DNA of 64,000 bases from Asterias rubens (taxonomy: Eukaryota), in contig NC_047071.1 of the NCBI RefSeq assembly GCF_902459465.1, positions 19,096,001 through 19,160,000 of the forward strand, in the 5' to 3' direction. The position numbers and the translations under genes were made by a program. This document shows, in pieces, positions 21,670 to 43,356 of the stretch; positions within the stretch are counted from its first letter, which is position 1, and each line of letters opens with the position of its first letter. The notes beneath the pieces are model-generated. The model worked only from the letters and a program-made list of their open reading frames with translations. It did not search any database and was not told the DNA's origin.

Positions 21670-21835
21670 GGCTTAGTCGCGGACGCGCGAGGGGCGTTTG
21701 GTTAACGCGTGAAATTTAAGCAGTGGGAAGCCGACGCCTAAAACGACAAACTAAAAGGCTTTTCTCGCCGCGCCACCAAAACAAGCTTCTGGGTAAGTTT
21801 CGGATCGGAAATGAGCACAAATTCTTAAAGATTTT
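21670..21835 (+). promoter_or_regulatory. CpG-rich promoter-like or first-exon-like module with a splice donor (CTGG|gtaagt at 21792/21793); inverted copy at 26400-26578
   Basis: TCGCGGACGCG...GGAAGCCGACGCCTAAA(A)CGAC...CCAAAACAAGCTTCTG(G/C)GTAAGTTTCG...GCACAAATTCTTAA is present in both orientations. Confidence 0.45.
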
Positions 21836-23185
21836 CAAGTAACCTGACCTAAGGTCAAGTTCATATTATATCGGTATCGCTTCGTCATTTTGTTAAATTT
21901 ATTTGTATACTTTTGTGTATGTTGTTATTAATGCCACTCTAAAGGACCAAAGTATGATTAGGTGCGAGTTGTGCGACGTGGCACAAACAAGCAAATAGGT
22001 ACCTGTCATGTCGCACAACTCGCACACAATAATGTATCGCACTAAGCAATGTATGTATTACAATGTGGTTCTATATCGGTGGAAATGTTTTGTGGAAATA
22101 AATGAATTTAATTGAATTTATTTGAATAATACTTTTGATCCTCGGGGCATACTTGGCCTATCAAAAGTATTATTGGGTTTCGAGTTGTGCGACGTGGCAC
22201 GTACCCGTTTCCTTGTTTCCATTGACTTCTGATTGAACTTAAAGCAACATTTTCAATGAGTTTCGATATTAAATGTCAAATTAGAAATCGGTGTATAGTT
22301 CTTGAGATTGTTCAAGTAACCTGACCTGATGTCAAGTTTAAATATCGGTTTGTCTTCGTTGTTTTGTAAAATTTATTTGTTACTTTTGTGTATGTTGTTA
22401 ATAATGCCACTCTAAAGGAACAAAGTATGATTAGGTGCGAGTTGTGCGACGTGGCACAAACAAGCAAATAGGTACCTGTCATGTCGCACAACTCGCACAC
22501 AATAATGTATCGCACTAAGCAATGTATGTATTACAATGTGGTTCTATATCGGTGGAAATGTTTTGTGGAAATAAATGAATTTAATTGAATTTATTTGAAT
22601 AATACTTTTGATCCTCGGGGCATACTTGGCCTATCAAAAGTATTATTGGGTTTCGAGTTGTGCGACGTGGCACGTACCCGTTTCCTTGTTTCCATTGACT
22701 TCTGATTGAACTTAAAGCAACATTTTCAATGAGTTTCGATATTAAATGTCAAATTAGAAATCGGTGTATAGTTCTTGAGATTGTTCAAGTAACCTGACCT
22801 GATGTCAAGTTTAAATATCGGTTTGTCTTCGTTGTTTTGTAAAATTTATTTGTTACTTTTGTGTATGTTGTTAATAATGCCACTCTAAAGGAACAAAGTA
22901 TGATTAGGTGCGAGTTGTGCGACGTGGCACAAACAAGCAAATAGGTACCTGTCACGTCGCACAACTCGCACACAGTAATGTATCGCACTAAGCAATGTAT
23001 GTATTACAATGTGGTTTTATAATATTGTTGAGATGTTTTGTGGAAATAAATGTATTGAATTGAATTAAAATTGAATAACACTTTTGATCCTCGGGGCATA
23101 CTTGACCTATATCAAAAGTATTTTTTGGGTGCGAGTTGTGTGACGTGGCACGTACCCGTTTGCTTGTTTCAATTGACTTCGGATT
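21836..23185 (+). repeat. Tandem array of about 2.8 copies of a 473-477-bp unit
   Basis: CAAGTAACCTGACC recurs at 21836, 22313 and 22786; identical 67-aa ORFs lie 473 bp apart; each unit contains the hairpin GTGCGAGTTGTGCGAC...GTCGCACAACTCGCAC. Confidence 0.95.
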
Positions 23186-23524
23186 TAGGCTTCAGGCCCC
23201 GTCTTCTCGTCTGAAGCCCTGAGAAGCCCATACGCAAAGCACACGCAATTGTCAAAACAACCGCGGGGCCAAGCTAGCCTAAGCCGAATATGGAGCCAGA
23301 GCCGTTGATTCGAAAAGGGCGTGCCAGTGCTTACTGGTGGTACCACCTCTCGGGCCGCGCACAATCCTGGCAGCCTTTAAAACCCATGCGTTTTCGCTAA
23401 ATTCACTACTTGTGTTCCTTCCCAGTGTAACGTCACATCGTAAAGTCACATTGCAGCAAACCCGGGCCACAGCTTACAGCAAGAACTCTCCACAAAGCTC
23501 TTGTTAGAAACCACCTGCATCACC

Positions 23525-26500
23525 ATGGCCAGTAAGTATTCACTTCAAAATAAATGGAGTGTAAGTTATGGAGGACGAAAAGTGGCCAATCAGAATAGCA
23601 GAAAGGCAGATTTTACGTTGTTTTTTTGTACGAGTTTTTCTTTTTTTCTGCTTTTCCGCTACCTGAAAAGCAGATTGAATTTTTTGTGAAAATGCATTTT
23701 CTTCTTTTCTATTATTTTGTCTGTTACCAGAAAAGCATGTTTTACTTTATCTCCAAATGCTGGCGGACTAAAAGTGGCCATTCGTTTTTTTTTTATTTTT
23801 TTTTTTTTACTAGGACAGCCCATGAAGGTTTTGGTTTATTGAACACATCCAAACGTGTCCACAAGGGAAACTGACCGACGTGTTTTTTGTAATGGGAGAA
23901 TCTTATTGGATGTAGTCGTGAACCCTCCACCGGCGTGTACAAAAGTGATTCTTCCAGTACGTACCAACTGACTGACGTGCAATGTAGGCTTATATGCGAT
24001 TGGTTCCCAAACACAAAACACACTTTCTGCACTCGTACAGTAGGCTCTACATCAGTGTGCGCGTGTTATAATGGTTCACGTTCACGGGTGGTCCTTTAAA
24101 CGCAAAAACGCATTGATGGCCACTTTTCGGTCACCTAGATAAAATATGATTTTCCGGTGTCCGAAAGGAGAAAAGAGGATGGCCACTTCTCGGCCGCCTG
24201 TGTAAAATCTGCTTTTCAGTTGGCAGAAAAGCAGAGAAACAGAAAATTGCATTTTCACGAAACGTTAAATCTGCTTTTCTACTTTCCTGGTAGCAGAAAA
24301 GCAAACGGCCACTTTTCGTCCGCCAGCATAAGGAGATAAAGTAAAACCTGCTTTTTGGTAACAGACAATTAGAAAACTACAAAATGCATTTTCGCAAACC
24401 GTTCAATCTGCTTATGTAGAAAAGGAGAACAATTCATAAAACCCATACAATCTGCTTTTCTGTTCTTTTCTGCTAACAGAAAAGCAGCGCAGATGGCCAC
24501 TTTTCGTCCCCCATATTATGATATACTACTGTTGATCACTGACCACAAATATTTGCAACTAAATAGAAACCGAATCATCTTGAAACGGTACTTGTCTTAG
24601 GTGAATTAGGGTAAAAGGACGCGAAAACTGCATAATAGTTCGAGACATGCACATGCACGAACATGTCCCCGTTCGCCCCGCTCGCGAGTTGCGATCAAAA
24701 CTTTCAATATGACGGCGATTTGTACAGCAGTAATAGGCAAACGCAGTCAACAACCGCTAGATTGCGGCCGTGATTTCTCATGTAATTATTGATGCAGGGT
24801 TATGATTTTTGGTTTAAACATTACTTTTGTTCAATTTAAAACACTTTTCATGTTTTTTTATCACTGTAAGTTCGGACCCAAGGGCAAATTAGAGAAAGCT
24901 TAACGCTGCTGTTTGGATGCACTAACACATGTTATTAAGAGATCACCCCCACCTCCCCCACCCCTAAAAAAACACAAACAATTGCTCATACACCAAGCTA
25001 AATTAAAGGTTACCAATCGTTTTATTTTATTTTCGGTGTTTTTTTATTTTTATTATTCATAATTCACGTACAAACAGCATTTTCTTAAATCATTACAATA
25101 TCAACAGTCAGTTACAATATTTTTCATTTAATTGTTATAATTTTTAATGTGTGAATTCTGAGTCAAATAAACTTTAAACTTTAAATTTAAAGTTGCAATT
25201 TTAGAATATAAAGAAACACCATGTACATAAATTAAAATACTGTTAGGCAAAAATTCTTACTGGCACCCAAACAAAATATACCACCAAAATAGGCCTAGAT
25301 AGCTCAGTTGGTAGAGAGCCGGTACGGAGGTTCAAGTCCCACTCAGGTCATTTTTGCCTTGTTCAAGCCCAAATCATTAAAACTTTACCAAGTAATGTTT
25401 TTACTTGAACTTAAATTTTATTACAAACTACATGGATTCACAGGGGAATTTGAGCATAATCTTTCCATTTACAATGCTTTACAGTAATTGAACGCTGATC
25501 CAAAATGGGTAGCACTTTTACGGTAATGAACTGAGGGGTTCCTATTTTGAAAGATGAACTTTGATTTGAAACATTAAAATGTTACTTTGTTAAAAAAAAA
25601 AATATTTTTTAAATGAGGCATTAAGCTTTGTGTAGTGTCTCTTCCTTGCTGAATAAAGGAGAAAAACAGCTCAAAGAAGTTGTCTCACCTCACATGCCAT
25701 TGATCTGTTGGATAAAACAAAAATATGAAAATAAAATTCTTTTGAAAATATAAGACCGTGTTTAAAATGAAAGGGTAGTGGTTATTAATTAAAAGGTAAC
25801 CACAGAAAATTAACTTCAACTTATTGTAAACTAAAGATGGAATTTGGAGGAGGAAACAGGGGCAGGGAAATGCTTTTTTACAAACAATTCATAAGGAAAA
25901 TTGGATAAAATAACATTTTGCAGCCTCATGATGTTGGAAAATTTATCCAAAATACATATTTTGAAAAGTGTTTTCCCTTTGTTTACCACCTGTGGTAAAA
26001 AGAAAGAGAACAGTTACGAAATTTTAGGCTACTTAGAAAACTGTGGGTGATTAACACACATTATATTCATGTAGTAAAGCCCAAGTCCTTCATTGCGGTA
26101 ACAATTCCTTTTTATAATTGACCGAATGGTTTACAGAATTGGTTTACACCGAGTGGCTGTTTAATCAGACAATGTTCTTGAAACAAGAGGAATCCCTAAC
26201 CAACGGAATGTTTTTTTTGTTTTTTTGGGGGGGGGTCGCCAAAGTTTCTTACTTTTACTATAGCGGCGCTGTAGACAGCTTTCTTATAAATCAATTATGT
26301 TTGCAAAACCTGACAGCAATGTTGGATCACCCTCCTGCTCACCTCCAAAAAGGGGAACACACTCTTTGGCCCTCCAATGACTCTAGGAACTGGTGATGAT
26401 TTTAAAAAATTAAGAATTTGTGCCCATCTCCGATCACGAAACTTACGCAGAAGCTTGTTTTGGTCGCGCGACGTGAAAAACCTTTTTATTGGTCGTTTAG

Positions 26501-29500
26501 GCGTCGGCTTCCTCTTTAAACTGCTTAACGTATTAAACAAAAATGCCCTCGCGACCATCGTGCGTCCGCGAATCAGCTAGTCTGTACATAGCCCTGGCGG
26601 CCTTACACTTTCGTATTGTACTACAGTGACGTCCTGAACATCATGGTACCTTTCTGGGGCGGAACATTCGCAGCTTCATAACTCAAATCTTACCTGCAAC
26701 AAGCCACTAATTTCAACAGATTCACACTCCATGGCAGCAAATGTTTTTCTGCGGTGGGTTTTGATCGTCATATTATGTTCTTCACAAATCCGTCATTTTC
26801 ATGAAATAATGCAGCTCCCAACGTTAAGAAATTCAAATTTTTGTTCGTACTCTAACAGTCTGCCGTGTGTACGCAAGACGCACGACGCGCAAATACTGTG
26901 ACATTGTGAGAAAACGATCAAAACGGGAACTTTTTAACGTTGGGAGCTGCATTATTTCACGAAAATGACGGATTTGTGAGGAATATATGAGGACCAAAAC
27001 CCACCGCAGAAAAATGTATGCCGCCACAGAATGTGATTCTGTTGAAATTAGTGGCTTGTTGCAGGTAAGATTTGAGTTATGAAGCTTTGAAAATTTTCCG
27101 CCCCATAAAAGGGCCTTAATAGTTAGGACTCTGTATCTGTGCATAGATGAAGAGTCCTATATAGGGCTAGTCTGTACACAGATACACAGTCTTAACTATT
27201 AAGGCCCGTTTCTGGGGCGGAAGTTTTCAAAGCTTCATAACTCAAATCTTACCTGCAACAAGCCACTAATTTCAACAGATTCACATTCCATGGCGGCATA
27301 CATTTATCTGCGGTGGGTTTTGGTAGTCATATATTTTTCACAAATCCGTCATTTTCGTGAAATAATGCAGCTCCATACGTTAAAAAATTCCCGTTTTGAT
27401 CGTTTTCTCACAGAGTGTTGTCTGCTCTCCGTGCGCGTAGGCGTATACATTCGCGTGCAAGAAGACGCAAGTTGCAAGACGCATGAATTCTTGGGTCACC
27501 GTATCTTGACTGCATGCACAGCGTTAACACGCAAACGCAACGCAAGATTGGCGCGTCGTGCGTCTTGCGTCTTGCGTACACACGGCAGACTGTGAGAATA
27601 CAAACAAAAATGGGAACTACTTAACGTTGGGAGCTGCATTCTTTCATGAAAATGACGGATTTGTGAAGAATAATTATATGACGACCAAAACCCACCGCAG
27701 AAAAATATATGCTGCCATGGAATGTGAATCTGTTGAAATTAGTGGTTTCTTGCACGGGTAAGATTTGAGTTATGAAGCTTTGAAAACTTTTCTCCCAAGA
27801 AATGGTATACAAATATTGAGTGGCTCAGAGTGGGAATGGGAGGAATATTATCGCAAGGTAAAATTTGGACTGTTCCATTTCACGAGGCGAAGCCGAGTGA
27901 AATGGAACAGGCCAAATTTTACCGAGCGATAATATTCCTTCCATTCCACGAATTAAACCCACTCAATATTTGTTTTATGTAACTGACATATAGATCCTTG
28001 TAATTTTAATGTATTTTAAAAGTATGACATTGTGAAAAATCACACAAAAATTTCTGACAACCAAACATCATATAGCGGCCGCGTAGCGGCAACAACGTAC
28101 AAATCGGATCACAACCTTTTGCACAGGTGCTCCTTTGTTTTGGCAGCGGCGCGGCGGCGCTGTACTGCTCAAAAACATTGGGAAAGGATGATCCTAACTG
28201 TTTAATGGGAAATGCTATTCCCCATGGGCGAATAGGTGTTTTTGATCGCCGGTGCGGATAGGAGTTAGTGAATGTCACGTGAATAAAGTTCCACCAATCA
28301 AATGACAAGGATCTGTATGTCAAATTATAAACCCTGATATCCAGGACGTCACTGTAGTATACGTAAGTGTAAAGCCGCAAGGGCTACGAGTCAGCCAGCT
28401 TTTAATTTAGTAGTTTCCCAATCGGGCGTAGATTTTAATAGGTACGGAGCTCCAGGAGTGCCATCTCACATATCGAGTTACCGACATAATGTATCGCATC
28501 AAGACGACTTATTTAATTTAGTGTAATAATGTAACTTACCGACATACTTATCTTGCTGAGTCGACTTAGATAAATGATAAATCGACTTACTGGCATCATT
28601 CATCTCAACAAGTCGACTTAGATAAAATGATAAGTCAACTTACTGACATAGGCCTAATCCGTATCTCAACAAATCCACTTGGGTCGACTAATACTGACAA
28701 AATTGATCTCACCAAGTCGACACACAGAAACTGAGAAGTTGACTTTATACACACTATCCGCACCTCGTCCAACTCTGATTGTATAAGTCAATTCAGGCAT
28801 CTTCTTCAATTTCATTTTATGTAACAAGCAAACTTATTAATTTACTGATTTTGTTTAAAAAGGTTTAATGGCTGTTAGCAAACTGCATGAAGTACGTGTA
28901 AAATATTGTTACTGGCCTCACGTTTTGACCATAGCTACGTGATAAGAATGATAAAGGATAAAAGTTGGTTTTCGGCATAACTATTCATCAAACTATAAGT
29001 CTTTACACAAATAAAACATTCACAAGAAAATTAATGGAAGGTAGCAGACAGCACACAATGGAACCGAGTTTGATAGTGACAATACCAAAAGTGCAACCAT
29101 CAGTCGTTGAACTAATTCTACCTCCATGATTATACTATACGCCGATGGTTATCAAAAGGATACCATTTTATTGCCGCCAAAACCAACCACTCAACGGACC
29201 GGAATCTATGCGCAGATGAAATATTCAAAAGAATATCCATATATTCCCCCCTCGGCTGTACAAAACAGGAAATTCCACCGAGTCTCAAGAATGAAATAAT
29301 AAATCATGCATTCAGTTCGAAAGGATAAAAGTTTGTTTTCGCCATAACTATTCATCAAACTATAAGTCTTTACACAAATAAAACATTCACAAGAAATTTG
29401 TTGTATGGGAGGTAGCAGACAGTACACAATGGAACCGAGTTTATAAATAGTGACAATACCAAAAGTGCAACCATCAGCCGTTGATGTAATACATTACACT

Positions 29501-32500
29501 ATCCGCTGATGGTAATCAAAAGGATTTTATTGTCACCAAACGAACAACTTATATACAACGGACCGGAATCTATGCAGAGACAAATGTTCAAAAGAATATC
29601 CATACATTTTCCCCTCGGCTGTACAAAACAGGAAATTCCACCACGTCTCAAGGGATAATAAATCCAACCAATTACTACGTCTCAAGGGATAATAAATCCA
29701 ACCAATTATATTAAACGGACCGGAATCTATGTACAGATAAAATATTCAAAAGAATGTGCAAACATTCACCCCCCCCCCCCCCCACACCCCCTCGGGTGTT
29801 CAAAACGGCATGGACCACATTACAGCGCGCAACAATTGTATACTGGATTTTCATATTTCAAAGGGCAAGGGTATTTACGATTTGCAAAGGGCACTTCCAT
29901 TGGAAAGTCTAGGGGAAACTTTTTTTGGAAGGGGCACCAACTCAAAGACCAGGGGCAACATGGGCAGTGATGGAGAACGTCCAGGCTGGTAGTCCAGGAG
30001 CTTATGGTGATCCGTAGAAAATAAATGATTAGAAGATGCCACCTAGCTAGATACCTTCTTTAGGTCATACAAAATAAGAAAATACATGTTGGCAAACTTG
30101 AAAATCTGGCAGATGGCGGCCATCTTGGATTTCAAAAGGGCAACTATTTAAGTTGTATTTTTCCTTCAACTTTGGCTGTGAATGTCATAAAACGGTGATT
30201 TTTGTGGCTAGAATTACTTAAATAGCAGTAAAAGGTACAACTGAATTGTTTCAGATGGCGGCCATCTTAGAATTCAAAATGGCCGCCTTTTTATGTATTT
30301 GTTTCCATAACTTGGCAATGGCAATGTTGTTGTAATTTCCATAACTTGGCAATGGCAATGTTGTTGTAAAATCCTGTTTTTTTGGTGACTAAAGTAATAT
30401 TCGCAATGACTATCAAGCTATACAAGCTAGCATTCATATAATTAATATATATATAAGACCAATAGAAACAAATATTGAACCATTAAGTTAAGGCCGCCAT
30501 TTTGAATTTCAAAATTGCCGCCTGTCAAATGCATGTTTGCGCCTGTATCACGGTCTATGAGCCTCACAGAAACTTGGTGTTAGTGGCTATACCCATGTTT
30601 GCATGGTCAAAATATAACTTAAATGGCGTCCATTTTGAAATCCAAGATGGCCGCCCTCTGCCACATCTGTCAGGTTGCCAACATGGTTTTTCTTGTTCTT
30701 GAAAGTCTTATTTAGGTATCTAGCTAGGTGGCATGTTCTAATCATTTATTTTCTACATACGGGACTTAATTTTTGGTCATCAGCTCCCCGACTATGGCGT
30801 TTATTAATGTTTTGCGTTGTCAAAGAGAAGGTTTCAAACAGGAAATTCCACCACGCTGATATTCCACACTGAGAAAGAGTACAATCCCACATTTCAGAAG
30901 CACATCGTTCCCCCCAATGGACCGTTCCGGCTTTCCACTAAGCTCCGCCCACCGCACACGTGAGCAAGACACGTGTACGAACACTCCCAATGACATTCTG
31001 CACGATTCTGCCGCGCGGGCCAAACATACGCGCACGCATGACCGAGTTTGTCCGACCACAATCATTGCTGTGATTGGTCAAATGAGTGAACGCGCACAGT
31101 TTGATTGATAGGCCAAAACGGTCCATTGATGTTGCTAGCTCCACATACCTTATATGGATTTAGTTGGAGCGCCAGATTAGCGTCACTAGGTGACGAATTT
31201 GAGGCTATAATTTTGTTATTATAAGACGCCACTTTTTTTCTTTTTTTATATATAGATCGAGATTTGAAGACGACGATTCAGTGGCAGAATCTTGAATTGT
31301 TGACACGTTATGACAACAATGATATGGACGGACTCAAGAATCTCTTCACTGAGGATTGTAAAATTTGGGTAGGGGGATCAGATGATACACTCTACAAACA
31401 GGATGGTAATGGACACTACTGATGAATTTTTTTCCAGTTATGTAATTAAACAATTTCGGGGGGCTAGACTTGGTTACAAGACCTTGGCATGGGGTGGGTC
31501 AATTCAAACAACATAACTAATTATAACTATTGTTGGTAGTTCGCAACACTGAAGGGATCAATTCAAAATAACGTGCGTTACTGATCCTTGTTTTGCTTTC
31601 CGTTAAGGAGAATGGACGAGAAAGTGTAGATTCGTGAATAGAACATTTTTATAACTATTTTGCAAAAAAAAATTGTATACTTTAGTGCACGCATCATTAT
31701 CGAGTACAACGTCAGTTTACTCAGCTAGCAATAAATTGGGATTCTTAAGTTGAGAAAAAAAGTGTGGATTCTAAATAAAGAAATTAATTTTAAAATATAG
31801 ACTAGTAAAAGCTCGTTGAATCTCGTATATATCTTCTATGAATTATACAGATGTCCCCAGGTTGCTGCGTGCTGCGCGAGCAGGAGGTGCAAAGTACAAG
31901 CGCGAAACTGATGAAGTCGGACCACCAGGCACTGATGGCACGGTGTATGAGAGAGGACGTTTTTTAGCCATTGGACCGGATGGGTCATCGTCTGTATCTT
32001 CCGGCAAGTACGTCATCATGTCGTTTTTTTTTTCCAAAATCCCTTCCACTTTGGGCTTCGAGTTGACCCCATTTTATAAAATGTACCACCAGTACTTTAT
32101 AATTGCACAAATTCTCATACGAAGACTCTGACAAAATGTCAGAAACACAGTCTCGAAGACGCCTAACACAGACATGTTTCAACGTTTCGAGCATGTACGT
32201 AAAGCTAGCATGAATATCAGACAAACTAACTTCCGGGTGTAGGCCTATACAGCATAAAACTTTGTTGGGAGAAGTGCTGATTCTTGTGTCGCCTCGACGA
32301 TTCGAACCGCTCAAAAAATAATAGTGAGCGTTACAGCTGCTTTTCATCCGTTGTTGTACCGTTGCAGTACGAATAGGAATCACTGACTTTATATTATCAT
32401 TTTGAACTTTTACACTCCTTTTTAAAGGGTTTCTTGAAAATAATTATGTTATTTCAGGCGCCGCCCATCCCATAGGGGATGTAAACAAAAAAATGTTTCT

Positions 32501-32823
32501 TAGTAGTGCAGTTGCCACTTGCAGCCTGACAGATTCACGCCAAAATTCTCTAAAGATGCGTGGGTCGAAGCTAGCGATTAAAGTAACGAGAATCTTTGTT
32601 AATTAATGTTCTACTAACACACACGTGGTTTCACAGATGGAACTGAACAGATGCCAACTAACCCCCACCCCCCCCCCCTCCCACCACCACCAATAATTAT
32701 TCTTCATTTTCATTTCACAGCTATCTTAGCATCTGGAAAAAAATAAATGGAGAATACAAACTGCACCAGACGCACATTAAAGGACCACCTGACCTTGTCA
32801 GTCCGATGGAGTGTCATACTTAA
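23525..32823 (+). CDS. NTF2/SnoaL-like (DUF4440-type) small protein, copy 1; exons 23525-23531, 31256-31405, 31851-32007, 32721-32823 (138 aa)
   Basis: CACC-ATG GCC A|gtaagt micro-exon. Spliced protein: MANRDLKTTIQWQNLELLTRYDNNDMDGLKNLFTEDCKIWVGGSDDTLYKQDDVPRLLRAARAGGAKYKRETDEVGPPGTDGTVYERGRFLAIGPDGSSSVSSGNYLSIWKKINGEYKLHQTHIKGPPDLVSPMECHT. The DMDGL..LFTED, VYERG and Y..IWKK motifs are typical of SnoaL-like/DUF4440 proteins. Linking exon 1 across a 7.7-kb intron rests on its identity with exon 1 of copy 2. Confidence 0.75.
23569..24513. mobile_element. TA-flanked TIR element rich in internal AAAAGTGGCCA and AATCTGCTTTT repeats, in intron 1 of NTF2-like copy 1
   Basis: TA|TGGAGGACGAAAAGTGGCCA ... 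TGGCCACTTTTCGTCCCCCA|TA. Confidence 0.75.
25291..25400 (+). mobile_element. tRNA-derived SINE head (truncated)
   Basis: Pol III A box TAGCTCAGTTGG (25300-25311) and B box GGTTCAAGTCC (25329-25339), but no anticodon arm. Confidence 0.6.
26645..27808. repeat. ~1.2-kb imperfect palindrome built from four alternating copies of a ~200-bp arm (inverted dimer of a fold-back element)
   Basis: The arm GCTTCATAACTCAAATCTTACCTGCAACAAGCCACTAATTTCAACAGATTCAC...GCAGCTCC occurs at about 26650(+), 26930(-), 27200(+) and 27620(-); arm 1 pairs best with arm 4 and arm 2 with arm 3. Confidence 0.85.
27809..27973. mobile_element. Hairpin MITE centred on CGAGGCGAAGCCGAG
   Basis: ACAAATATTGAGTGG...CCACTCAATATTTGT arms; a related hairpin (CGAGGCGGAGCCGAG) lies at about 35830-35892. 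Confidence 0.7.
28470..28790. repeat. Degenerate short-period repeats of an AAGTCGACTTA motif
   Basis: At least 8 imperfect GTCGACTT/GTCAACTT cores occur in about 300 bp. Confidence 0.6.
28953..29750 (+). repeat. Degenerate ~370-bp tandem duplication (about 2.2 units)
   Basis: AAGGATAAAAGTT..TTTTCG.CATAACTATTCATCAAACTATAAGTCTTTACACAAATAAAACATTCACAAG occurs at about 28953 and 29322; AACGGACCGGAATCTATG occurs three times. Confidence 0.85.
30011..30762. mobile_element. Fold-back element with ~130-bp TIRs, rich in AAGATGGCGGC/AAATGGCCGCC motifs
   Basis: GTAGAAAATAAATGATTAGAAGATGCCACCTAGCTAGATACC is mirrored at 30715-30757; no clear TSD was found. Confidence 0.7.
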
Positions 32824-33123
32824 CGGACACTTGGATAATTAATAAGCAGTTCTTGTAAAGCGCATAATATTAAAAAAAGTCTCTACGTGATTAAAAATAT
32901 TGGTTTTTAAGTTTAGATTTAAATTGTTCTAGCGAAACCCATGAAACACAACGGAATGGTCCTTATTTAGGGCAACATTATTTTATAATCTTTAATCCTA
33001 GACAAAATTGAGTTTGCATTATAACGAACAAATTAGTACAAATCCAGTGCAACTCTTTTTATATAAAATAAACTGTCTGTGATCGTTGTGAAATGGGAAA
33101 TACTTGCGGATACTCACAACTAA

Positions 33124-33579
33124 ATACGCCTCTCTTAATATTTATGCATGACGTCAAAATTCTTACCCAAAATGAGGCTATGGGCGCACGTCCCCCATCA
33201 CTTGCAGTGGCTGCGCCCATCGCCTCGTTTTGGATTAGCATTGTGACGTACCTCATGCATAAATATTAAGAAAGGCGTATAGACCCTTCCCATGAAATAT
33301 GTAAGATGCACAAAGCGCGTGCGCACTAACATTTTGGTTGGCAAAATATAAGGAAACATCGCGCTGTTTTGTACCACAGAATTATTCTATATCTATGTTT
33401 TGTCGTAGAAATAGAATAGAATAATATTTAATTCTATATTTGTGTGTTTTGTACACGGCTAATGGCTGTGCTACACAGACGCGTGTGTGCGTCTGTTTAG
33501 TGCACAACTCTGGCGTTTGCAAACCAATAGGGTCTGTACGCATGCGTTAATGTAATTAGCATATTTCATAGGAAGGGTC
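33124..33579. mobile_element. Two abutting short TIR elements (33124-33280 and 33282-33579)
   Basis: TIRs ATACGCCTCTCTTAATATTTATGCATGA and GACCCTTCCCATGAAATATG, each mirrored at its far end. Confidence 0.65.
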
Positions 33580-34120
33580 CATTATCATTTGCGCGTTAAT
33601 TAAAGCTTATTTGTTTGCTCAATTAATTAAGTTTTTAGTTTCATCTATTTTTAAGAGCCCATTGACAACTATACCGCTGTTGTACTTGCTGGCAGAGTGT
33701 TTTCTTGTACACTCTTAACCAAATCTTTGACCGCTGTTGATTGACACTAAGACAATTACATCGTAGGCCTGCATGTACTTGCCATCATGGCATTGTGTTA
33801 AAAAAGAACTTCTTTAAACAAATTTAATTCCACTCGATGCCACATAAACTGTTTATGTTCGATCACGATGCACTTCCAATGAGCGAGTCTTGCAAAGATA
33901 AAACCATTCAAGAACAGATTAATGCCTCCAAGCACATAAAATATTCGTTGCGAGGCACTGGTATATTGGTCTCAAACATTTCAACCACGTAAATTTGGGG
34001 CAATCTTTAGTCATCAGGTACCCTTTTTTCAAGAGAAAATAAGTAAAAAGAGAACCAACATTAAACATACAATGATGACGATAACCACCAAAAAGTGTGA
34101 CATGAGAACCAACAGATTAA

Positions 34121-34361
34121 AGGCACTAGCTGTACACGTTTGGTAATTAAGACCAGTATCCCATAAGCATACAATAACAATCCTGTGAACATTTGGGTTC
34201 AATATTGGTCATCGAAATTACCTCTTTCTCAAAAACTACGTTACTTCAGAGGGAGTCGTTTCCCAAAATGTTTATACTATCAACAGCTCTCCAATGCTCG
34301 TTACCAAGTCAGTTTTAAGTTAATATTTGCCTTAGGTAATTACCAAACGTGTACCTTCCCT
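34121..34361. mobile_element. Degenerate, internally deleted family A-related MITE
   Basis: TTAA|AGGCACTAGCTGTACACGTTTGGTAATT ... AATTACCAAACGTGTACCTTCCCT|TTAA. Confidence 0.65.
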
Positions 34362-34837
34362 TTAACGTGACTCTGGGAACCCAATCATGTTAACTATGAT
34401 AAGCATATCGACCCGACACCTTTCATTTTTGAGAGTGCCCAATTGGAGTGTGTTTGCCTTTTCACTGATAACAATTTGACGAACCTCTATAACAGTAATA
34501 TATGCAAATATATTCAAACAAAAAAAGGTGTTATAAGAAGTCTGATTATCTATATTGTAATGCTCAATAAATATTAATGTTTGACTAGTCGATGGTTATT
34601 CCTGTCCGTTTTTGAGTCACTCAAATGTCTTGAAAAAGCCTTAAACAATGCTGTAACCTCATAATATAGAGGGTATCTTGGTTTGAAGAAAGAACTCTGT
34701 TTGTAGGGCCTAACTAATGTTTTGTTGTATGTTTGTGGGTACTATTGGGCGAGAGTTGGGCGAAGTGGCGCGTACCCATTTGCTTGTTTCTAATGACTTC
34801 ATCGATTAAGGCCTGTGCCATATTTCGGGGAGAACAC

Positions 34838-35064
34838 TAGACTTGACTCAAGTCCTAATCCCGTGCCATCCCCAGAAAACTACTGTTTTGTGATGCTCTT
34901 CGTTCCCAAACCTGTTCCGCACGCGGGACAGGCATTCTCGGGACCACATTTTGACGGCGAGCGCGCAGCACTGTATACTGTGTATGCTACGGGTTGTTTG
35001 ATAGTAAGTTGGCGTGATATGCTTAAGGGCCTCTCACACGAGAATGGGACTTGAATCAAGTCTA
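34838..35064. mobile_element. TAG...CTA MITE with a perfect 9-bp TSD (AcademH- or MULE-type)
   Basis: TIR TAGACTTGACTCAAGTCC; GGAGAACAC is duplicated at 34829-34837 and 35065-35073; same TIR family as 49011-49124. Confidence 0.85.
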
Positions 35065-35341
35065 GGAGAACACCGGTCATGTTTAAACACGGGTGAAAAA
35101 TTATTTCCTGTAATTAAAATTCGAAGTAAACATTGTTCCATAGAGTACACTGTAAAGTTCGCGTTTGTAAAAGGGACTGGACACTCCCCAGCCATTTCCA
35201 GACACTGTGGCCCTTTTGAAACCACGGCTTCGGCTTTGGATTTGGCTCAGGCTACGTTCTCTTGTCTGAAACCCTGAGCGCGTAATAGGCAAAGCACGCG
35301 CAAATTTTCAAAACAACCACAGTGCCAAGCTAGCCTAAGCC

Positions 35342-36592
35342 TAGCCCACCTTATTGAGCTGTTAATGGCTCCGCTTTTAACATCGGTCTCATCACTGTCA
35401 CCATTACAGCCCACCTTCGATACATGTCTTAAACGCTAAGTTTTCAAAGGTCGCAAAATGCGTGGTAGTTTGTGTAAATTTCTCCCATTTAAAAAAGTCC
35501 TATACTACTCCAACATACCTCATTTTATTCCTTACATTTGTGGAATTAATATGACGCATGTCAGGGCTAACTAAATGATGACTTTGTCCAGATGTGATGA
35601 TTTGAAAATTGGTCCAAAAAATCGTGTACAAAAATTACATTTAACGTGACATGTGCTTGGGCGCCGCCATGTTTTAATGATTCTCCTCCTGTTGATCGTG
35701 GGCGCCCGGCAAATCTTGCAAGTCATGAATATCCATAAGGTGACGTCATGATCGCTAGGCTTATGTGCGTGTTCAGTAATATACACATAATGAATGTTTA
35801 TGAGTGCAATGGTGCGAATATGTACATGAGTTGAAAGATGGAATGTTCTATTCAACGAGGCGGAGCCGAGTTGAATAGAACATTCCAGCTTTTAGAGACC
35901 AGCTTTTAGAGACCTTTTCTATTACAATGTCACAGCCCAAGTTTTTGCCAAACGAGGTTTGGGAAACTGTGGAAAGCCATAAATGCAAAACTACGACCGC
36001 TAGCTACAGTTTGTAACAATGCTACACCAAATATAAAACTGAATAATGTATAAGGTGACGTAGCGATGCGCTGTATCTGGAAACTACCACCGCGCAGTGT
36101 CACCTCATACATATTCATATTTACTTTGTACACCACACAAATTGATAAATTAGCGTAGCCATACCGCGTCACGTGACATTACCTCTTGGATATTCATGAC
36201 TTGTAAGATTTGCCTGGTGCCCTGACTTCTCACGTCCAACAAGAGGAGCATCATTAAAACATGGCGGCGCCCAAGAACATGTCACGATAAATGTAATTTT
36301 TGCACACGATTTTTTGAACCAATTTTCAAATCGTCACATCTGGACAAAGTCATCATTTAGTAAGCCCTGTTATGTGTCATAGTAATTCCACAAAATGTAA
36401 GGAATAAAATGAGGTATGTTGGAGTAGTAAAGGACTTTTTTAAATGGGAGAAATTTGCAATGAAACTACCACGCATTTTGCGACCTTTGAAAACTTAGCG
36501 TTTGAGACATGTATCGAAGGTGGGCTGTAATGGTGACAGTGATGAGACCGATGTTAAAAGCGGAGCCATTAACAGCTCAACAAGGTGGGCTA
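35342..36592. mobile_element. 1.25-kb fold-back element with ~430-bp TIRs, TAG...CTA termini and a perfect 9-bp TSD
   Basis: TAGCCCACCTT...AAGGTGGGCTA; GCCTAAGCC occurs at 35333-35341 and 36593-36601; the empty site is seen in the paralogous sequence at about 23270-23300. Confidence 0.92.
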
Positions 36593-36709
36593 GCCTAAGC
36601 CGAATCTGGAGCCGAAGCCGTTGATTCGAAAAGGGCGTATGTCAGTGCTCACTAGAACCACCTCGTGCACGTGTAGACCGCACAGCCGTCCCGCATTGGG
36701 ACGCGCACA

Positions 36710-37423
36710 TAGTCTTGCCCCAAGATTGCTCGATATTGGATAGTGTACTGCGTTCAGTTCTGACTCGCTAAAGCGCGCCCTCCTTTGACTGGTTTGTGGG
36801 GCAAGACCATAGAGCTATAGACCTTTCTTTTGTTGATAAACAAACCGCCTTGGTTGGCATGGTCGGCCGAATGTTAGTAAAACACTCAATCGTAAAAACA
36901 GATGTTTCCACAAAATTCAACATTTTCTGCAAATTTTCATATAAATAAAATACCTCTCATGATAAGTTGCTTTGTTTTAAACAACATCAATTGAAACACT
37001 GTTACCAAAAATAGCGATCTATTCTTGATTTGCACTTTCTATAGTTTTCCAATCTGGGTTGGCACAAACTCGGGCTGTGACGTTGCAAAAGAAAGGTCTA
37101 TAGCTATAGCTCTATGGGCAAGACTAGACTCCGGCGTAGTCTAGCTCGCTAGACTACGCCGGAGACTAGTCTTGCCCCACGAACCAGTCGATGGAGGGCG
37201 CGCTTTAGCGAGTTACAAAGACCTTTTCGCAAATACCGGGGCGCGCGCGTAAAGCTTGGAATTAGGTGCATTGTGGTCTAGCTGGTGTCCAAATTTGATC
37301 CATATATATCCCACAATGCACCTCATTCAACAGTCTGCGCTTGCGCATTGGTATTTGCGATAAGGTCTAGCTTAGCGCAGTACACTATCCAATATCGAGC
37401 AATATCGTCTCGGGGAAAGACTA
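36710..37423. mobile_element. Composite TAG...CTA fold-back element (degenerate 9-bp TSD) containing a nested insertion
   Basis: TIR TAGTCTTGCCCC..GATTGCTCGATATTGGATAGTGTACTGCG; flanks ACGCGCACA and ATGCACACA (7/9); internal mirrored arms at 36763-36807 and 37169-37213. Confidence 0.7.
36808..37116. mobile_element. Nested CATAGAG...CTCTATG element with an 8-bp TSD (P- or hAT-type MITE)
   Basis: TIR CATAGAGCTATAG..ACCTTTCTTTTG; GGCAAGAC is duplicated at 36800-36807 and 37117-37124. Confidence 0.85.
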
Positions 37424-37724
37424 ATGCACACACAGCTCAGATTTATGCTCGATGGTGGTTTATTTTAAAGCCACGGACAAAGTAGCACTAGAGCTTGGTT
37501 AAAAAGAATTTGCCGAATTTGACCCTGCTATTTGAACTATCCCCTCTTTTATTATAAAAGGGCCATGCACAATCCTGCCAGCCTTTAAACACATGACGTG
37601 TAATGTTCCCAGTGTCACGTATCGTACAATCACACACACCAACAGACCCAGCTCTAAAATAGCCGTCGCAGAACAGCAAGAACTCTCCACACACAGCTCT
37701 TTGTAACAAACAACCTGCCACACC

Positions 37725-38788
37725 ATGGCCAGTAAGTATTCACTTCAAAATAAATGAGGATTGTAGAATGATGCCACAGGGAGTGGACACACTCATCGGA
37801 AACCATGGTAATTGACACTACTCGGGGAGGTGGCTAGTATTGGTTCCAAGACCTTCGCATGGGTCAAGAGATAATTTTTAGTGTTATATCCTTGGTTGTA
37901 GGCACTGGACACTATTGGAAATTACTAAAAAGGAATTGTTAGCATAAAAACTTACTTAGTAACGAGCAATGGAGAGATGTTGATAGTATAAAACATTGTG
38001 AGAAACGGCTTCTTTTGAAGTAACGGATTTTTGAGTAAGGGGTAATTTCTCACTCAAATAATAAATGACTTCAGCATCTGAAAGCAAACAATTTTTAGGA
38101 ACAAGGGTGTTTTTTCTTTCATTATTCTCATGCAACTGCGATGACCAACTAAGTCCAAATGTTCACATAGTTGTTACTGTATGCAAATGTTGGGATACAC
38201 CAAGTGAGAATACTGCTCGCTGGCCATCGCACAATGAGAAAATATCTATAAACACACAAACACACAAAACGATGAAAATGAATGCCCAAAAATTTGAAAG
38301 GCTTTAAAATAATTTAATCTACGTTAAAGTTCATTGCTATTTTCTATGAATTCTCTTTCATGCAGTTGTCCCCAAGGTGATGGGTGGGATGCGTGACATG
38401 GGCGCTACCTCGTGCCAGCTTATAACTGATGAAGCCGGACCTCTAGGGGGCTCTGATGACACGGTGTATGAGAGAGGACATTATATATTCGGTAAAGCGG
38501 ATGGGTCAGAGTTAGCTGTCGGCAAGTACGTCATCATGTCGTTATTTATTTTAGAAATTCCTCCCAACTTTCGAGTTTACCCCATTTGTATAAGCTGTAC
38601 CGCCAGTAATAAAATAAAAATAATAAATAATAATAAAAAATAACACATGCGTGGTTTTATAGATATTGAAAGTTGCTGGTCTGAAACCCAGGTATTTATT
38701 TTCATTCCACAGATATGTTGTCATCTGGAAAAAGACAAGCGAAGGTTATAAAATGCACATTGACATTTTCAACGACAACACGGCTTAA
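37725..38788 (+). pseudogene. NTF2/SnoaL-like copy 2 with a deletion of most of intron 1 and the 5' half of exon 2; exon 1 at 37725-37731, exon-2 remnant at 37756-37807, exons 38366-38525 and 38713-38788
   Basis: Exon 1 and the start of intron 1 are identical to copy 1, then fuse directly to GAG GAT TGT AGA ATG ATG CCA CAG GGA (EDCRMMPQGVDTLIGNH) with no acceptor. Exons 3-4 are open (VPKVMGG...TVYERGHY...GKYVVIWKKTSEGYKMHIDIFNDNTA*). Exon 1 to exon 3 skipping would be in frame. Confidence 0.75.
37900..38220. mobile_element. Degenerate family A MITE in intron 2 of NTF2-like copy 2
   Basis: AGGCACTGGACACTATTGGAAATTAC followed by family A interior; the 3' TIR is missing. Confidence 0.7.
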
Positions 38789-41362: not shown

Positions 41363-43356
41363 ATGGATGGTAAGTCTAATATTATTTAAAATAAATTAGG
41401 GGTTCGAAGCTTAATTTTGGCATGTTTTTGCTCTATTTAGATTGTAGTTTTTTCCACCCCATGTGACAGAAAGGTCACACCATTAACACTAACCACGCGT
41501 GATGATTTTGCGTGAACTTTTCTGGTGTATTTGTAACTAAAAAGTCGTAGCTAACTAGTACCTGTATAGAAGGGAAAATCATTCAGTGTTTGAAATGTGG
41601 CATGTTGTACCCCTCCTTTTGTGTCTTTTTGTTCTGAGAATTTTAGGAATTCTTGGGGTGTTTTGATTTCTTTCATTTGATGTTTTCTTAAGTATTTTAC
41701 TTTGTATTTCTCTATCACATGTTTGGATTTCTTGATTTCCTCTTAGCCTATAGTGTAACATTTCATTTTTGGTAATTGTACATGTGTGTTTTTATGTTTC
41801 TATTTAGCGACATGAGCACTATAGATTTGTGCGCTTTGCAAATTGTCAATGTTATCTTTATTATTTGTAAATTAATCTCATTATTATAACTTACAGACAT
41901 TACGACTGCGATCGAAAAAAGGAAAGAGGAGTGGAAGAAGCATTTCTTAAATAATGACATGGTATCAACTAGTCAGATCTACTCATTTGACTGCAAGCTG
42001 ATGCCGCAAGGAAAAGAAACCATCTTAGGGAGGGAGAGTAAGTTTGCTTTTCATTATTCCTATTTGTTTTGTACTCAACATCAACCAAATCATTATCAAT
42101 CTGCCAAACCAAACACTTGTGGGTTCGCTCTAAATGTTTCATGTATGAGCCCTGGGTCTCAAGCGGATAGACAAGCTAACCGTTATGCTCATAGGCTGGG
42201 AAAGACCTATATGATGATTCCCGCCGAATTGGGGTATTCTTTAGATGATCTTCCCAGCTCGGCAAAGCCCCGCAAATGAACATAAACGCCAAGCTGGGGA
42301 TAGCTAATCTCTCTTACTCAGCCGCATTCGTGTGACGGCTATGGTTTATGAATTGTTGCACAAATTAATCAGTTTTGATTCAAGTACCTAATATGACGAA
42401 AATGTTGTCAATTCGGTGAGAGAGTACGCAGATAATGTCTTGAAACAACAAGACAAAGAACGAACTGGACTGAAATAATTGGGCAGGCCCGTCTGGAATC
42501 AGTACAAAAACAACAAAAATCTGCACACGAAATGAGTCAAACCATGCACCATCAATAAAAATGAACACTCAACACGTTTCTTTGTTAAATCAGAACCTTT
42601 ATTCCCTCCACACTTATAAAAAATAAATAATATTTCTGATTTACTCATCATTTTTATATACAGCTATACCAAAGGGATTAAGGGACCTACGAGACAAAGG
42701 TGGCTCGTCAGTGGAGTGGAACACTTTAGAGATAGGTCCAATGGATGGCAACGGTGACGTCATCTTCGAACGCGGCGAGTACAAATTTTCAAACCCAGAT
42801 GGTCCCGTGTGTGAAGGAAAGTGAGTATTGATTATTTCAACATGATATTAATATTTGTACAAAATAAACTTGTGGAGTAAGATAGCGTTTAGAATATATC
42901 AATTAATTTGCATTCCCTTTTCCAAAGGCAAGAACTCTTCCAACTGAAGAATCAAAATCGCTTTATTACGAATTCATGGAAGTGACATAGATTGCTTCTT
43001 TGCCAACATTTACCAATGTATAAAAATTATAAAGAATTGCTAGACATAGTTCATGTATCTGTTATTTCAGATCATCTACTCAGTTTTCAACTGAAAAAAT
43101 ATAAAACTACTACTATCGGATGAATTAACTTGGAAGACTTTAAACATTTACATACAACAGTTTCCACAACTCAAAACACATTTGCCTGTGATATAACAAA
43201 CCAGACATTGTGCGCATCATTGACTATAATCGCACTGGATTATACATTTTAATTTCAATTAATAATTTTTTTATTTTTTTCAGGCACTTGGTAATTTGGA
43301 AGAAGGTTTCTGGTGTTTACGAGATGTATATTGATATCTACAATGAAAACAAGTAG
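41363..43356 (+). CDS. NTF2/SnoaL-like (DUF4440-type) small protein, copy 3; exons 41363-41369, 41897-42037, 42664-42820, 43284-43356 (125 aa)
   Basis: Same 7-nt first exon and intron phases (1, 1, 2) as copies 1 and 2. Protein: MDDITTAIEKRKEEWKKHFLNNDMVSTSQIYSFDCKLMPQGKETILGRETIPKGLRDLRDKGGSSVEWNTLEIGPMDGNGDVIFERGEYKFSNPDGPVCEGKHLVIWKKVSGVYEMYIDIYNENK. Confidence 0.85.

Follow-up and report, generated by a model that had tools for sequence, protein, structure and literature searches.

Within the window, i.e., the whole 64,000-nucleotide stretch of the Asterias rubens genome analysed here, the first copy (copy 1) of a tandem array of three genes carries a strong mark of positive selection, as the initial annotation had proposed. 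Support comes from a nonsynonymous to synonymous rate ratio (ω) above 1 between orthologues, from exons that have diverged about four times as much as their introns, and from rejection of ω=1 on both the stem and the tips of the copy-1 clade. Copy 1 is thus probably a derived, young duplicate under recurrent positive selection which has kept its NTF2-like cone, next to a copy 2 that has been disabled. The gene models are listed in Table 1. The spliced model of copy 1 is identical to NCBI isoform X1 (P0006; 138 aa), while isoform X2 (also NCBI) is spliced from an alternative GC donor that follows 32003, with a frameshift that leaves a product of 111 aa. Copy 3 is an old paralogue under purifying selection with an orthologue in Patiria miniata (P0025), located there on a separate contig.

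Table 1. Features of the three tandem four-exon DUF4440/NTF2-like genes in the A. rubens window (positions are those of the window).
Gene	Feature	Positions	Strand	Remarks
Copy 1 (LOC117295769)	exon 1, coding part	23525..23531	+	ATGGCCA, donor GTAAGT
Copy 1	intron 1	23532..31255	+	7.7 kb, repeat-rich; A. amurensis counterpart L001:10008-18876
Copy 1	exon 2	31256..31405	+	helices 1-2, first strand, derived IWVGGSD loop
Copy 1	exon 3	31851..32007	+	
Copy 1	exon 4, coding part	32721..32823	+	tail 32779-32820 modelled as disordered
Copy 2 (LOC117295402)	exon 1, coding part	37725..37731	+	
Copy 2	deletion junction	37755..37756	+	lost segment present in A. amurensis (L002:2852-6364)
Copy 2	exon 2 remnant	37756..37807	+	EDCRMMPQGVDTLIGNH
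Copy 2	exon 3	38366..38525	+	one amino-acid difference from A. amurensis copy 2
Copy 2	exon 4	38713..38788	+	conserved ...HIDIFNDN end
Copy 3 (LOC117295401)	gene	41363..43356	+	exons 41363-41369, 41897-42037, 42664-42820, 43284-43356

The comparison of copy 1 orthologues involves two sequences, from A. rubens (Ar1) and A. amurensis (Aam1), with one assembly per species; the orthologous proteins carry the NCBI names of these two species. The loci are syntenic and their adjoining non-coding DNA is 96.6% identical; introns and flanks of copy 1 are 96–97% identical, the same level as for copies 2 and 3. Among 123 compared codons, 34 differ and every one of these changes the amino acid, the remaining 89 being identical in nucleotides, so that purely synonymous differences were absent. 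This corresponds to 44 nonsynonymous differences (Nd) over 288 sites (N) and 5 synonymous differences (Sd) over 81 sites (S), i.e., ω of 2.65 (NG86) or 4.4 (ML), with a bootstrap 95% lower bound of 1.41 and a Fisher p of 0.02, values to be read with the caveat that 12 of the 34 changed codons hold two or more differences and contain all path-inferred synonymous changes. Codons with multiple differences are the pattern expected of multi-nucleotide mutations, which inflate ω in standard codon models. The orthologue-based codon comparison suggested by the initial annotation places ω above 1, while the control pairs of copy 2 and copy 3 orthologues each gave ω of about 0.2.

The adjacent introns and 3' flank (2,002 nt) provide a neutral reference, from which one non-homologous intron-1 segment (48% mismatches) was left out. 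Nonsynonymous divergence (pN) of copy 1 was 15.3% compared with 3.4% in this reference (Fisher p=2e-13), and dN/K(intron) was 4.8, meaning that replacements accumulated about five times faster than changes in neighbouring non-coding DNA. Overall divergence of the copy 1 exons was 13.3% (nucleotide divergence from Aam1 was 15.3% in exon 2 and 11.7% in exon 3), and divergence peaks across the locus fall on exons. Exon substitutions were also rich in transversions (15:34 vs 38:31 in introns; p=0.009).

One explanation other than selection is that the excess is mutational, with multi-nucleotide mutations in clusters, error-prone repair at indels or exon-only conversion from a diverged donor (e.g., a retrocopy) as conceivable sources. 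Codons with multiple differences are indeed about twice as common as the roughly 6 expected, the chance of all 5 path-inferred synonymous changes lying in amino-acid-changing codons is about 0.002, and a complex indel patch occupies codons 98-103 in copy 1 of A. rubens (protein numbering). However, in the 22 codons that differ at one position only, all changes are nonsynonymous (22:0; p=0.004) and still exceed the intron rate 2.2-fold (p=0.001), and the result is unaffected by removal of the indel patch (ω was 3.1 once the 9 codons round the single indel were dropped). As for conversion, site patterns among the four genes favour orthology by 58:1 in coding sequence and 86:0 in flanks, identity runs with copy 3 never exceed 5 nt, and a search of the window, the A. 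amurensis loci and the protein database turned up no additional paralogue that could have served as a donor. We thus consider a mutational origin unlikely. The same site patterns, together with the lack of long copy 3 runs, lead us to reject gene conversion between paralogues, including as the source of the non-coding identity, a possibility raised by the initial annotation. GC-biased conversion and CpG decay were likewise rejected (W>S 8 vs S>W 11; CpG context for just 10 of 49 differences).

The acceleration is specific to the copy-1 lineage. Using our own GY94-F3x4 code on 8 taxa and 126 codons, we found ω of 7.1 in the copy-1 clade vs 0.10 in the background, with ω=1 rejected (2ΔlnL=19.5, p=1e-5); ω=1 was also rejected for the copy-1 tips (ω=5.0, p=0.003) and for the stem (p=6e-4). 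Tajima's relative-rate test counted 44 unique replacements in copy 1 vs 6 (p=8e-8). Copy 1 had been described as the derived copy, and it is: the IWVGGSD loop and the loss of DIFN are common to Ar1 and Aam1 and absent from all outgroups (Acanthaster, Patiria, amphioxus and hemichordate). A protein word search for further relatives of copy 1 gave only the two Asterias species, metagenome scans gave none, and an exhaustive representative search gave solely copy-2 or copy-3 types. The deuterostome orthologue group (A. amurensis XP_071794324, Acanthaster planci LOC110987909, Patiria miniata LOC119746546, and amphioxus and hemichordate homologues) shares with copy 1 the same four exons and a 7-nt first coding exon, copy 1 being a tandem duplicate at dS of about 0.3, but evolves with ω of about 0.1–0.2 whereas copy 1 has ω above 1 and is just 41–50% identical to copy 2.

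Within A. rubens, comparison of copies 1 and 2 bore out most of what had been read from the sequence. Protein identity in exon 3, put earlier at about 42%, was measured as 23/56 (41%); the quoted identical strings are exact matches in both copies, none of which is expected by chance; and conserved codons are mostly unchanged at third positions, the codon being identical for 28 of 36 conserved amino acids. First, second and third positions of the 93 shared codons showed 37, 39 and 25 differences, with pairwise dN of 0.52, dS of 0.30–0.37 and ω of 1.4–1.9. At such a dS synonymous sites are not saturated, and the combination of saturated dS and ω well below 1 that the initial annotation named as contrary evidence is not what we observed. 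Other statements need qualification. Flanking non-coding similarity, described as high, is so by the splice sites and around exon 1 but patchy elsewhere (35–82% where alignable). The contrast between IWVGGSD in copy 1 and MMPQG in copy 2 is exact, but the 'MMPQG..' stretch is an exon remnant because the deletion took away the acceptor of copy 2 exon 2 along with its initial 88 nt. More generally, statements that used copy 2 as comparator are exact as to sequence but overlooked that copy 2 is itself truncated in A. rubens.

About 3.5 kb is missing from A. rubens copy 2, comprising most of intron 1, the exon-2 acceptor and that first part of exon 2, and the identical 36-mer at 37721-37756 terminates at the deletion junction. 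The remnant has no usable acceptor and is skipped by the NCBI model (P0020); the sole in-frame product, with exon 2 skipped, comprises 80 aa and does not match Pfam, and A. rubens copy 2 thus bears the disabling lesion of a pseudogene. Judged from the reference sequence, a conserved, slow copy of ancestral type appears to have been disabled by deletion in A. rubens, with copies 1 and 3 intact. The proposed history is then as follows. Copy 1 would have been born when the DUF4440/NTF2-like gene conserved across deuterostomes (copy 2) was duplicated in tandem, a young event that nevertheless predates the divergence of A. rubens from A. amurensis. It would then have lost ancestral functional residues (the Tyr of LYTED, changed to Phe, the GKY lysine, and the aspartate and asparagine at the DIFN end), and its amino acids would since have been the target of recurrent positive (diversifying) selection with the NTF2-like cone preserved.

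Despite this rapid change the protein is still recognisable as a family member. Pfam DUF4440 (gathering cut-off 25.2 bits) matched copy 1 at 32.8 bits, A. amurensis copy 1 at 28.7 and A. amurensis copy 2 at 25.5, and matched neither copy 3 nor the 80-aa copy 2 product; a search of NCBIfam gave no match. Copy 1 shares with the DUF4440/SnoaL-like NTF2 superfamily an alpha+beta cone of about 125 aa, in which three helices pack against a curved sheet. AF2 models were confident (pLDDT 87.9 for copy 1 and 96.1 for A. amurensis copy 2), showed this cone and had 3HX8 and its derivatives (5IEN and 5IEP) as best Foldseek matches, with target-normalised TM-scores of 0.79–0.87. The closest solved structure, 3HX8, is a 'putative ketosteroid isomerase' of unknown function from Mesorhizobium loti (family profile E=5e-37), from which the CDL2.x vitamin-D3 binders were designed. 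Members close to copy 1 include none with a known ligand or activity. Fold-defining residues are retained in copy 1, including structural Gly, Trp and Glu, and the indel within exon 3 preserves the reading frame.

By contrast, copy 1 departs from the residue set of the copy-2-type subfamily. Near-invariant residues there are (in A. amurensis copy-2 numbering) Y31, G47, G102, K103, W108, D120 and N123; in copy 1 G102 and W108 are kept, but Y is changed to F, K to N or Y and D to T, N is lost, and A. rubens copy 1 additionally has G47 changed to K. Unlike the DUF4440 family, copy 1 therefore lacks the near-invariant Tyr, Lys, Asp and Asn as well as the DIFN end of the C-terminal strand. In A. 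amurensis copy 1 a stop falls at the conserved Phe codon, and in A. rubens copy 1 two nucleotides that A. amurensis has are deleted after 32778, so that the frame runs on into the former 3'UTR; this C-terminus looks damaged rather than designed.

Such losses raise the question of whether copy 1 is a decaying, unconstrained duplicate (an incipient pseudogene) whose changes reflect neutral drift under relaxed constraint. Four near-invariant residues are gone and the C-terminal strand is disrupted, the annotated isoform X2 is frameshifted, no spliced transcript contig of copy 1 was found in the sequence collection searched, and its substitutions favour family-variable positions, as relaxed constraint would predict likewise. 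Decay, however, predicts exon divergence equal to that of introns (3.4%) and ω of 1, whereas we observed 13.3% (15.3% for pN) and ω of 2.6–7. Furthermore, copy 1 had been called fully open, and its frame is indeed intact over 123 codons in both species despite 49 changes, with an in-frame indel, structural residues kept and a confident fold model. Since exons outpace neutral DNA, simple pseudogene drift, i.e., the relaxed pseudogene envisaged in the initial annotation, is excluded, and we regard decay in general as quite improbable. Very improbable, too, is that errors in assembly, annotation or orthology produced the result: this could be suspected from the single assembly per species and from one extra copy-2 duplication in A. 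amurensis (which makes the array dynamic), but splice sites are conserved, an independent environmental or run-assembly contig (P0003) matches A. rubens exon 3 exactly, and had each species kept a different one of two older copy-1 paralogues, introns and flanks would differ as well. Mistaken orthology was thereby ruled out by the near-identical introns.

Copy 1 may function as a binder, with a partner (small molecule or protein) that shifts between species, as in an arms race or species-specific recognition, and neofunctionalisation would fit such a scenario. Pocket remodelling, as initially suggested, was addressed with a proxy of 12 sites redesigned from 3HX8 to the CDL2.2 vitamin-D3 binder and mapped by hand. 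Copy 1 is changed at 11 of them but, since two thirds of all its positions differ, this is a marginal enrichment (p about 0.05). Changes are spread over the whole protein, many of them in helix 1 and in loops, which leaves remodelling of a ligand pocket as a tentative reading. Positive selection after duplication, or in fast-evolving marine-invertebrate proteins, is known from primate ECP/EDN RNases, abalone lysin, and sea-urchin and sea-star bindin. Copy 1 resembles these in exceeding the neutral rate at nonsynonymous sites between close species and in being a derived duplicate beside a conserved parent but, unlike them, has no signal peptide and no known reproductive or immune role. That copy 1 is a new Asterias-lineage binder in an ongoing arms race or species recognition, persisting with its parent gene lost in A. 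rubens, is accordingly a tentative reading which we hold to be possible but rather doubtful. NTF2-like folds bind carotenoids in other systems. Asteriarubin is a small-subunit carotenoprotein of A. rubens whose gene is still to be identified (PMC10608541); by analogy copy 1 might be a candidate for it, although we regard this link as extremely improbable.

The searched literature contained nothing on the DUF4440 family as fast-evolving or in echinoderms, nor on the locus names or on 3HX8/CDL2. The array is a compact natural experiment, in which a conserved parent, a very fast daughter and an old, slow paralogue lie together with adjacent introns as an internal neutral yardstick, and the apparent loss of copy 2 in A. 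rubens would add a case of gene turnover. Were the arms-race reading true, few proteins would be expected to evolve faster than copy 1 between A. rubens and A. amurensis (amino-acid divergence of 28% vs 3.4% neutral). If the selection is real, LOC117295769 would be a candidate for species-specific biology in A. rubens, a predator of ecological importance, and in A. amurensis, an invasive one, with immunity, reproduction and lipophilic-ligand handling as candidate roles, and would offer the first biological handle on an animal DUF4440 protein.

The window carries three four-exon genes in tandem, each with a 7-nt first coding exon (see table); by protein comparison, their spliced products match NCBI proteins of Asterias rubens. 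The score of copy 1 for DUF4440 (an NTF2-like/SnoaL-type domain) exceeds the Pfam cut-off. NCBI lists two isoforms for this gene, the frame shift in X2 ending the protein at 111 aa. The A. amurensis region orthologous to the tandem repeat upstream of copy 1 is likewise repeated.

Coordinates of the gene array and neighbouring features (window positions)
Feature	Position	Strand	Remark
Copy 1, LOC117295769	23525-23531, 31256-31405, 31851-32007, 32721-32823	+	exons; isoform X1, 138 aa (P0006)
Copy 1 isoform X2 (NCBI), GC donor	32003/32004		4 nt upstream of GT donor
Copy 2, LOC117295402	37725	+	start
Copy 3, LOC117295401	41363-43356	+	
Start-codon regions, copies 1 and 2	23496-23556 and 37696-37756		about 60 nt; start codon, donor, first 25 nt of intron 1
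36-mer	37721-37756		identical between copies 1 and 2; stops at deletion junction
Copy 2 deletion	37721-37807		joins the early part of intron 1 to the middle of exon 2; 2-nt microhomology at junction
Copy 2 exon-2 remnant	37756-37807		in-frame splicing impossible
473-nt tandem repeat	21829-23185		2.9 copies, 95% matches; just upstream of copy 1 promoter
Foldback-type element	35335-36599		upstream of copy 2; inverted arms about 415 nt, 90-97% complementary
Further palindromic element	about 36680-37230		
Dispersed repeat, SINE/MITE-like	5468, 14915, 18334, 34214, 37900, 39699, 44362, 50780, 57648, 61993		about 320-390 nt; at least 10 copies within the window, one in intron 2 of copy 2

We compared these genes with the A. 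amurensis array (loci L001, L002 and L007), the orthologues that Acanthaster planci and Patiria miniata each carry as a single copy, and one marine transcript. Copy 2 shares 62-68% identity with other sea stars and 46-50% with amphioxus and hemichordate proteins, and is the conserved type; copy 3, whose P. miniata orthologue lies on a different contig, is an old paralogue. Copies 1 and 2 were sisters in trees, with a long copy 1 stem, and unique replacements (44 vs. 6, p = 8e-8) bear out the initial annotation in taking copy 1 as the derived copy. Its other observations on this pair largely stood: exon 3 protein identity was 41% (about 42% claimed), the quoted strings were exact matches in the two copies, and conserved codons were mostly the same at third positions (differences by codon position 37/39/25; identical codon at 28 of 36 conserved residues). 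The high similarity claimed for flanking non-coding DNA was seen chiefly next to splice sites and near exon 1; overall, similarity was patchy (35-82%). Pairwise estimates (dN 0.52, dS 0.30-0.37) gave an ω of 1.4-1.9, by itself not significantly above 1. The start-codon region is nearly invariant across the four copy 1 and copy 2 genes of both Asterias species, which suggests a constrained 5′ element.

The copy 1 genes of the two species are orthologues: their loci are syntenic and introns 2 and 3 plus the 3′ flank, our neutral yardstick, differ at just 3.4% of sites (69/2,002), a non-coding divergence equal to that of copies 2 and 3. By contrast, the exons differ at 49 of 369 sites and coincide with divergence peaks in a sliding plot. 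These differences sit in 34 of 123 codons, all 34 with an altered amino acid, while the other 89 are identical; polarised by copy 2, 26 changes were specific to A. rubens, 10 to A. amurensis and 11 ambiguous. Nonsynonymous divergence reached 15.3% vs. 3.4% in introns (p = 2e-13; dN/K(intron) 4.8), and ω was 2.65 by NG86 (Nd 44/288, Sd 5/81; Fisher p = 0.02, bootstrap lower bound 1.41) and 4.4 by maximum likelihood, against about 0.2 for the orthologue pairs of copies 2 and 3. A branch model (our own GY94-F3x4 code; 8 taxa, 126 codons) estimated ω as 0.10 in the background and 7.1 in the copy 1 clade, with ω = 1 rejected for the clade (2ΔlnL 19.5, p = 1e-5), its two tips (ω 5.0, p = 0.003) and its stem (p = 6e-4). 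The proposal of positive selection on copy 1 is supported by an orthologue ω above 1, by rejection of ω = 1 and by exons outpacing introns.

The main caveat is that multi-nucleotide mutations may inflate this signal: 12 changed copy 1 codons carry at least 2 differences, and all path-inferred synonymous changes fall within such codons. However, all 22 single-difference codons are nonsynonymous (p = 0.004) and alone evolve at 2.2 times the intron rate, and ω is still 3.1 without the indel patch. As for mutational bias, transversions are commoner in the copy 1 exon spectrum than in introns (p = 0.009); GC bias is absent and CpG involvement small. Neutral decay is disfavoured: drift cannot push exons to four times the rate of their own introns, and both species retain an open reading frame. 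There is no sign of gene conversion, with orthology-consistent sites far outnumbering species-wise ones (58 vs. 1 in coding sequence, 86 vs. 0 in flanks).

A point overlooked by the initial annotation is that copy 2, a deuterostome-conserved gene, has been disabled in A. rubens by a deletion of about 3.5 kb relative to A. amurensis L002, which took out 88 nt of exon 2 together with its acceptor and the greater part of intron 1. The NCBI model (P0020, 80 aa) splices exon 1 straight to exon 3, and its product had no match to Pfam; A. amurensis has two intact copy 2 genes of 127 aa each. At L002:1-7646, a 202-aa A. amurensis model (P0021) merges upstream AMP-binding-enzyme-like exons with copy 2b; the array there has AMP-binding genes on its flanks.

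AF2 models of copy 1 and A. amurensis copy 2 were both confident (pLDDT 88 and 96), their best structural matches being 3HX8, a putative ketosteroid isomerase, and vitamin-D3 binders designed from it. Copy 1 retains structural Gly, Trp and Glu residues; near-invariant residues are changed (Y31 to F, K103 to N or Y, D120 to T) or lost (N123). In A. amurensis, a conserved Phe codon at the C-terminal end has become a stop; in A. rubens, a 2-nt deletion at this place extends the frame by 14 residues, modelled as disordered. Using the 12 positions altered in the 3HX8-to-CDL2.2 design, mapped by hand, as pocket proxies, we found 11 to differ in copy 1, an enrichment that is only marginal because copy 1 differs at roughly two thirds of positions overall; helix 1 and loops hold many changes. 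Judged by eye, copy 1 has no signal peptide. The cyanobacterial OCP contains an NTF2-like fold that binds carotenoids. The gene for asteriarubin, a small-subunit carotenoprotein of A. rubens, has not yet been identified (PMC10608541); the copy 1 protein would be at most a speculative and improbable candidate.

We found nothing in the searched literature on the loci of this array or on fast-evolving DUF4440 genes. Positively selected young duplicates are a well-known phenomenon, of which the present case is unusually clear-cut: copy 1 is most likely a neofunctionalised, putative binding module under recurrent diversifying selection.
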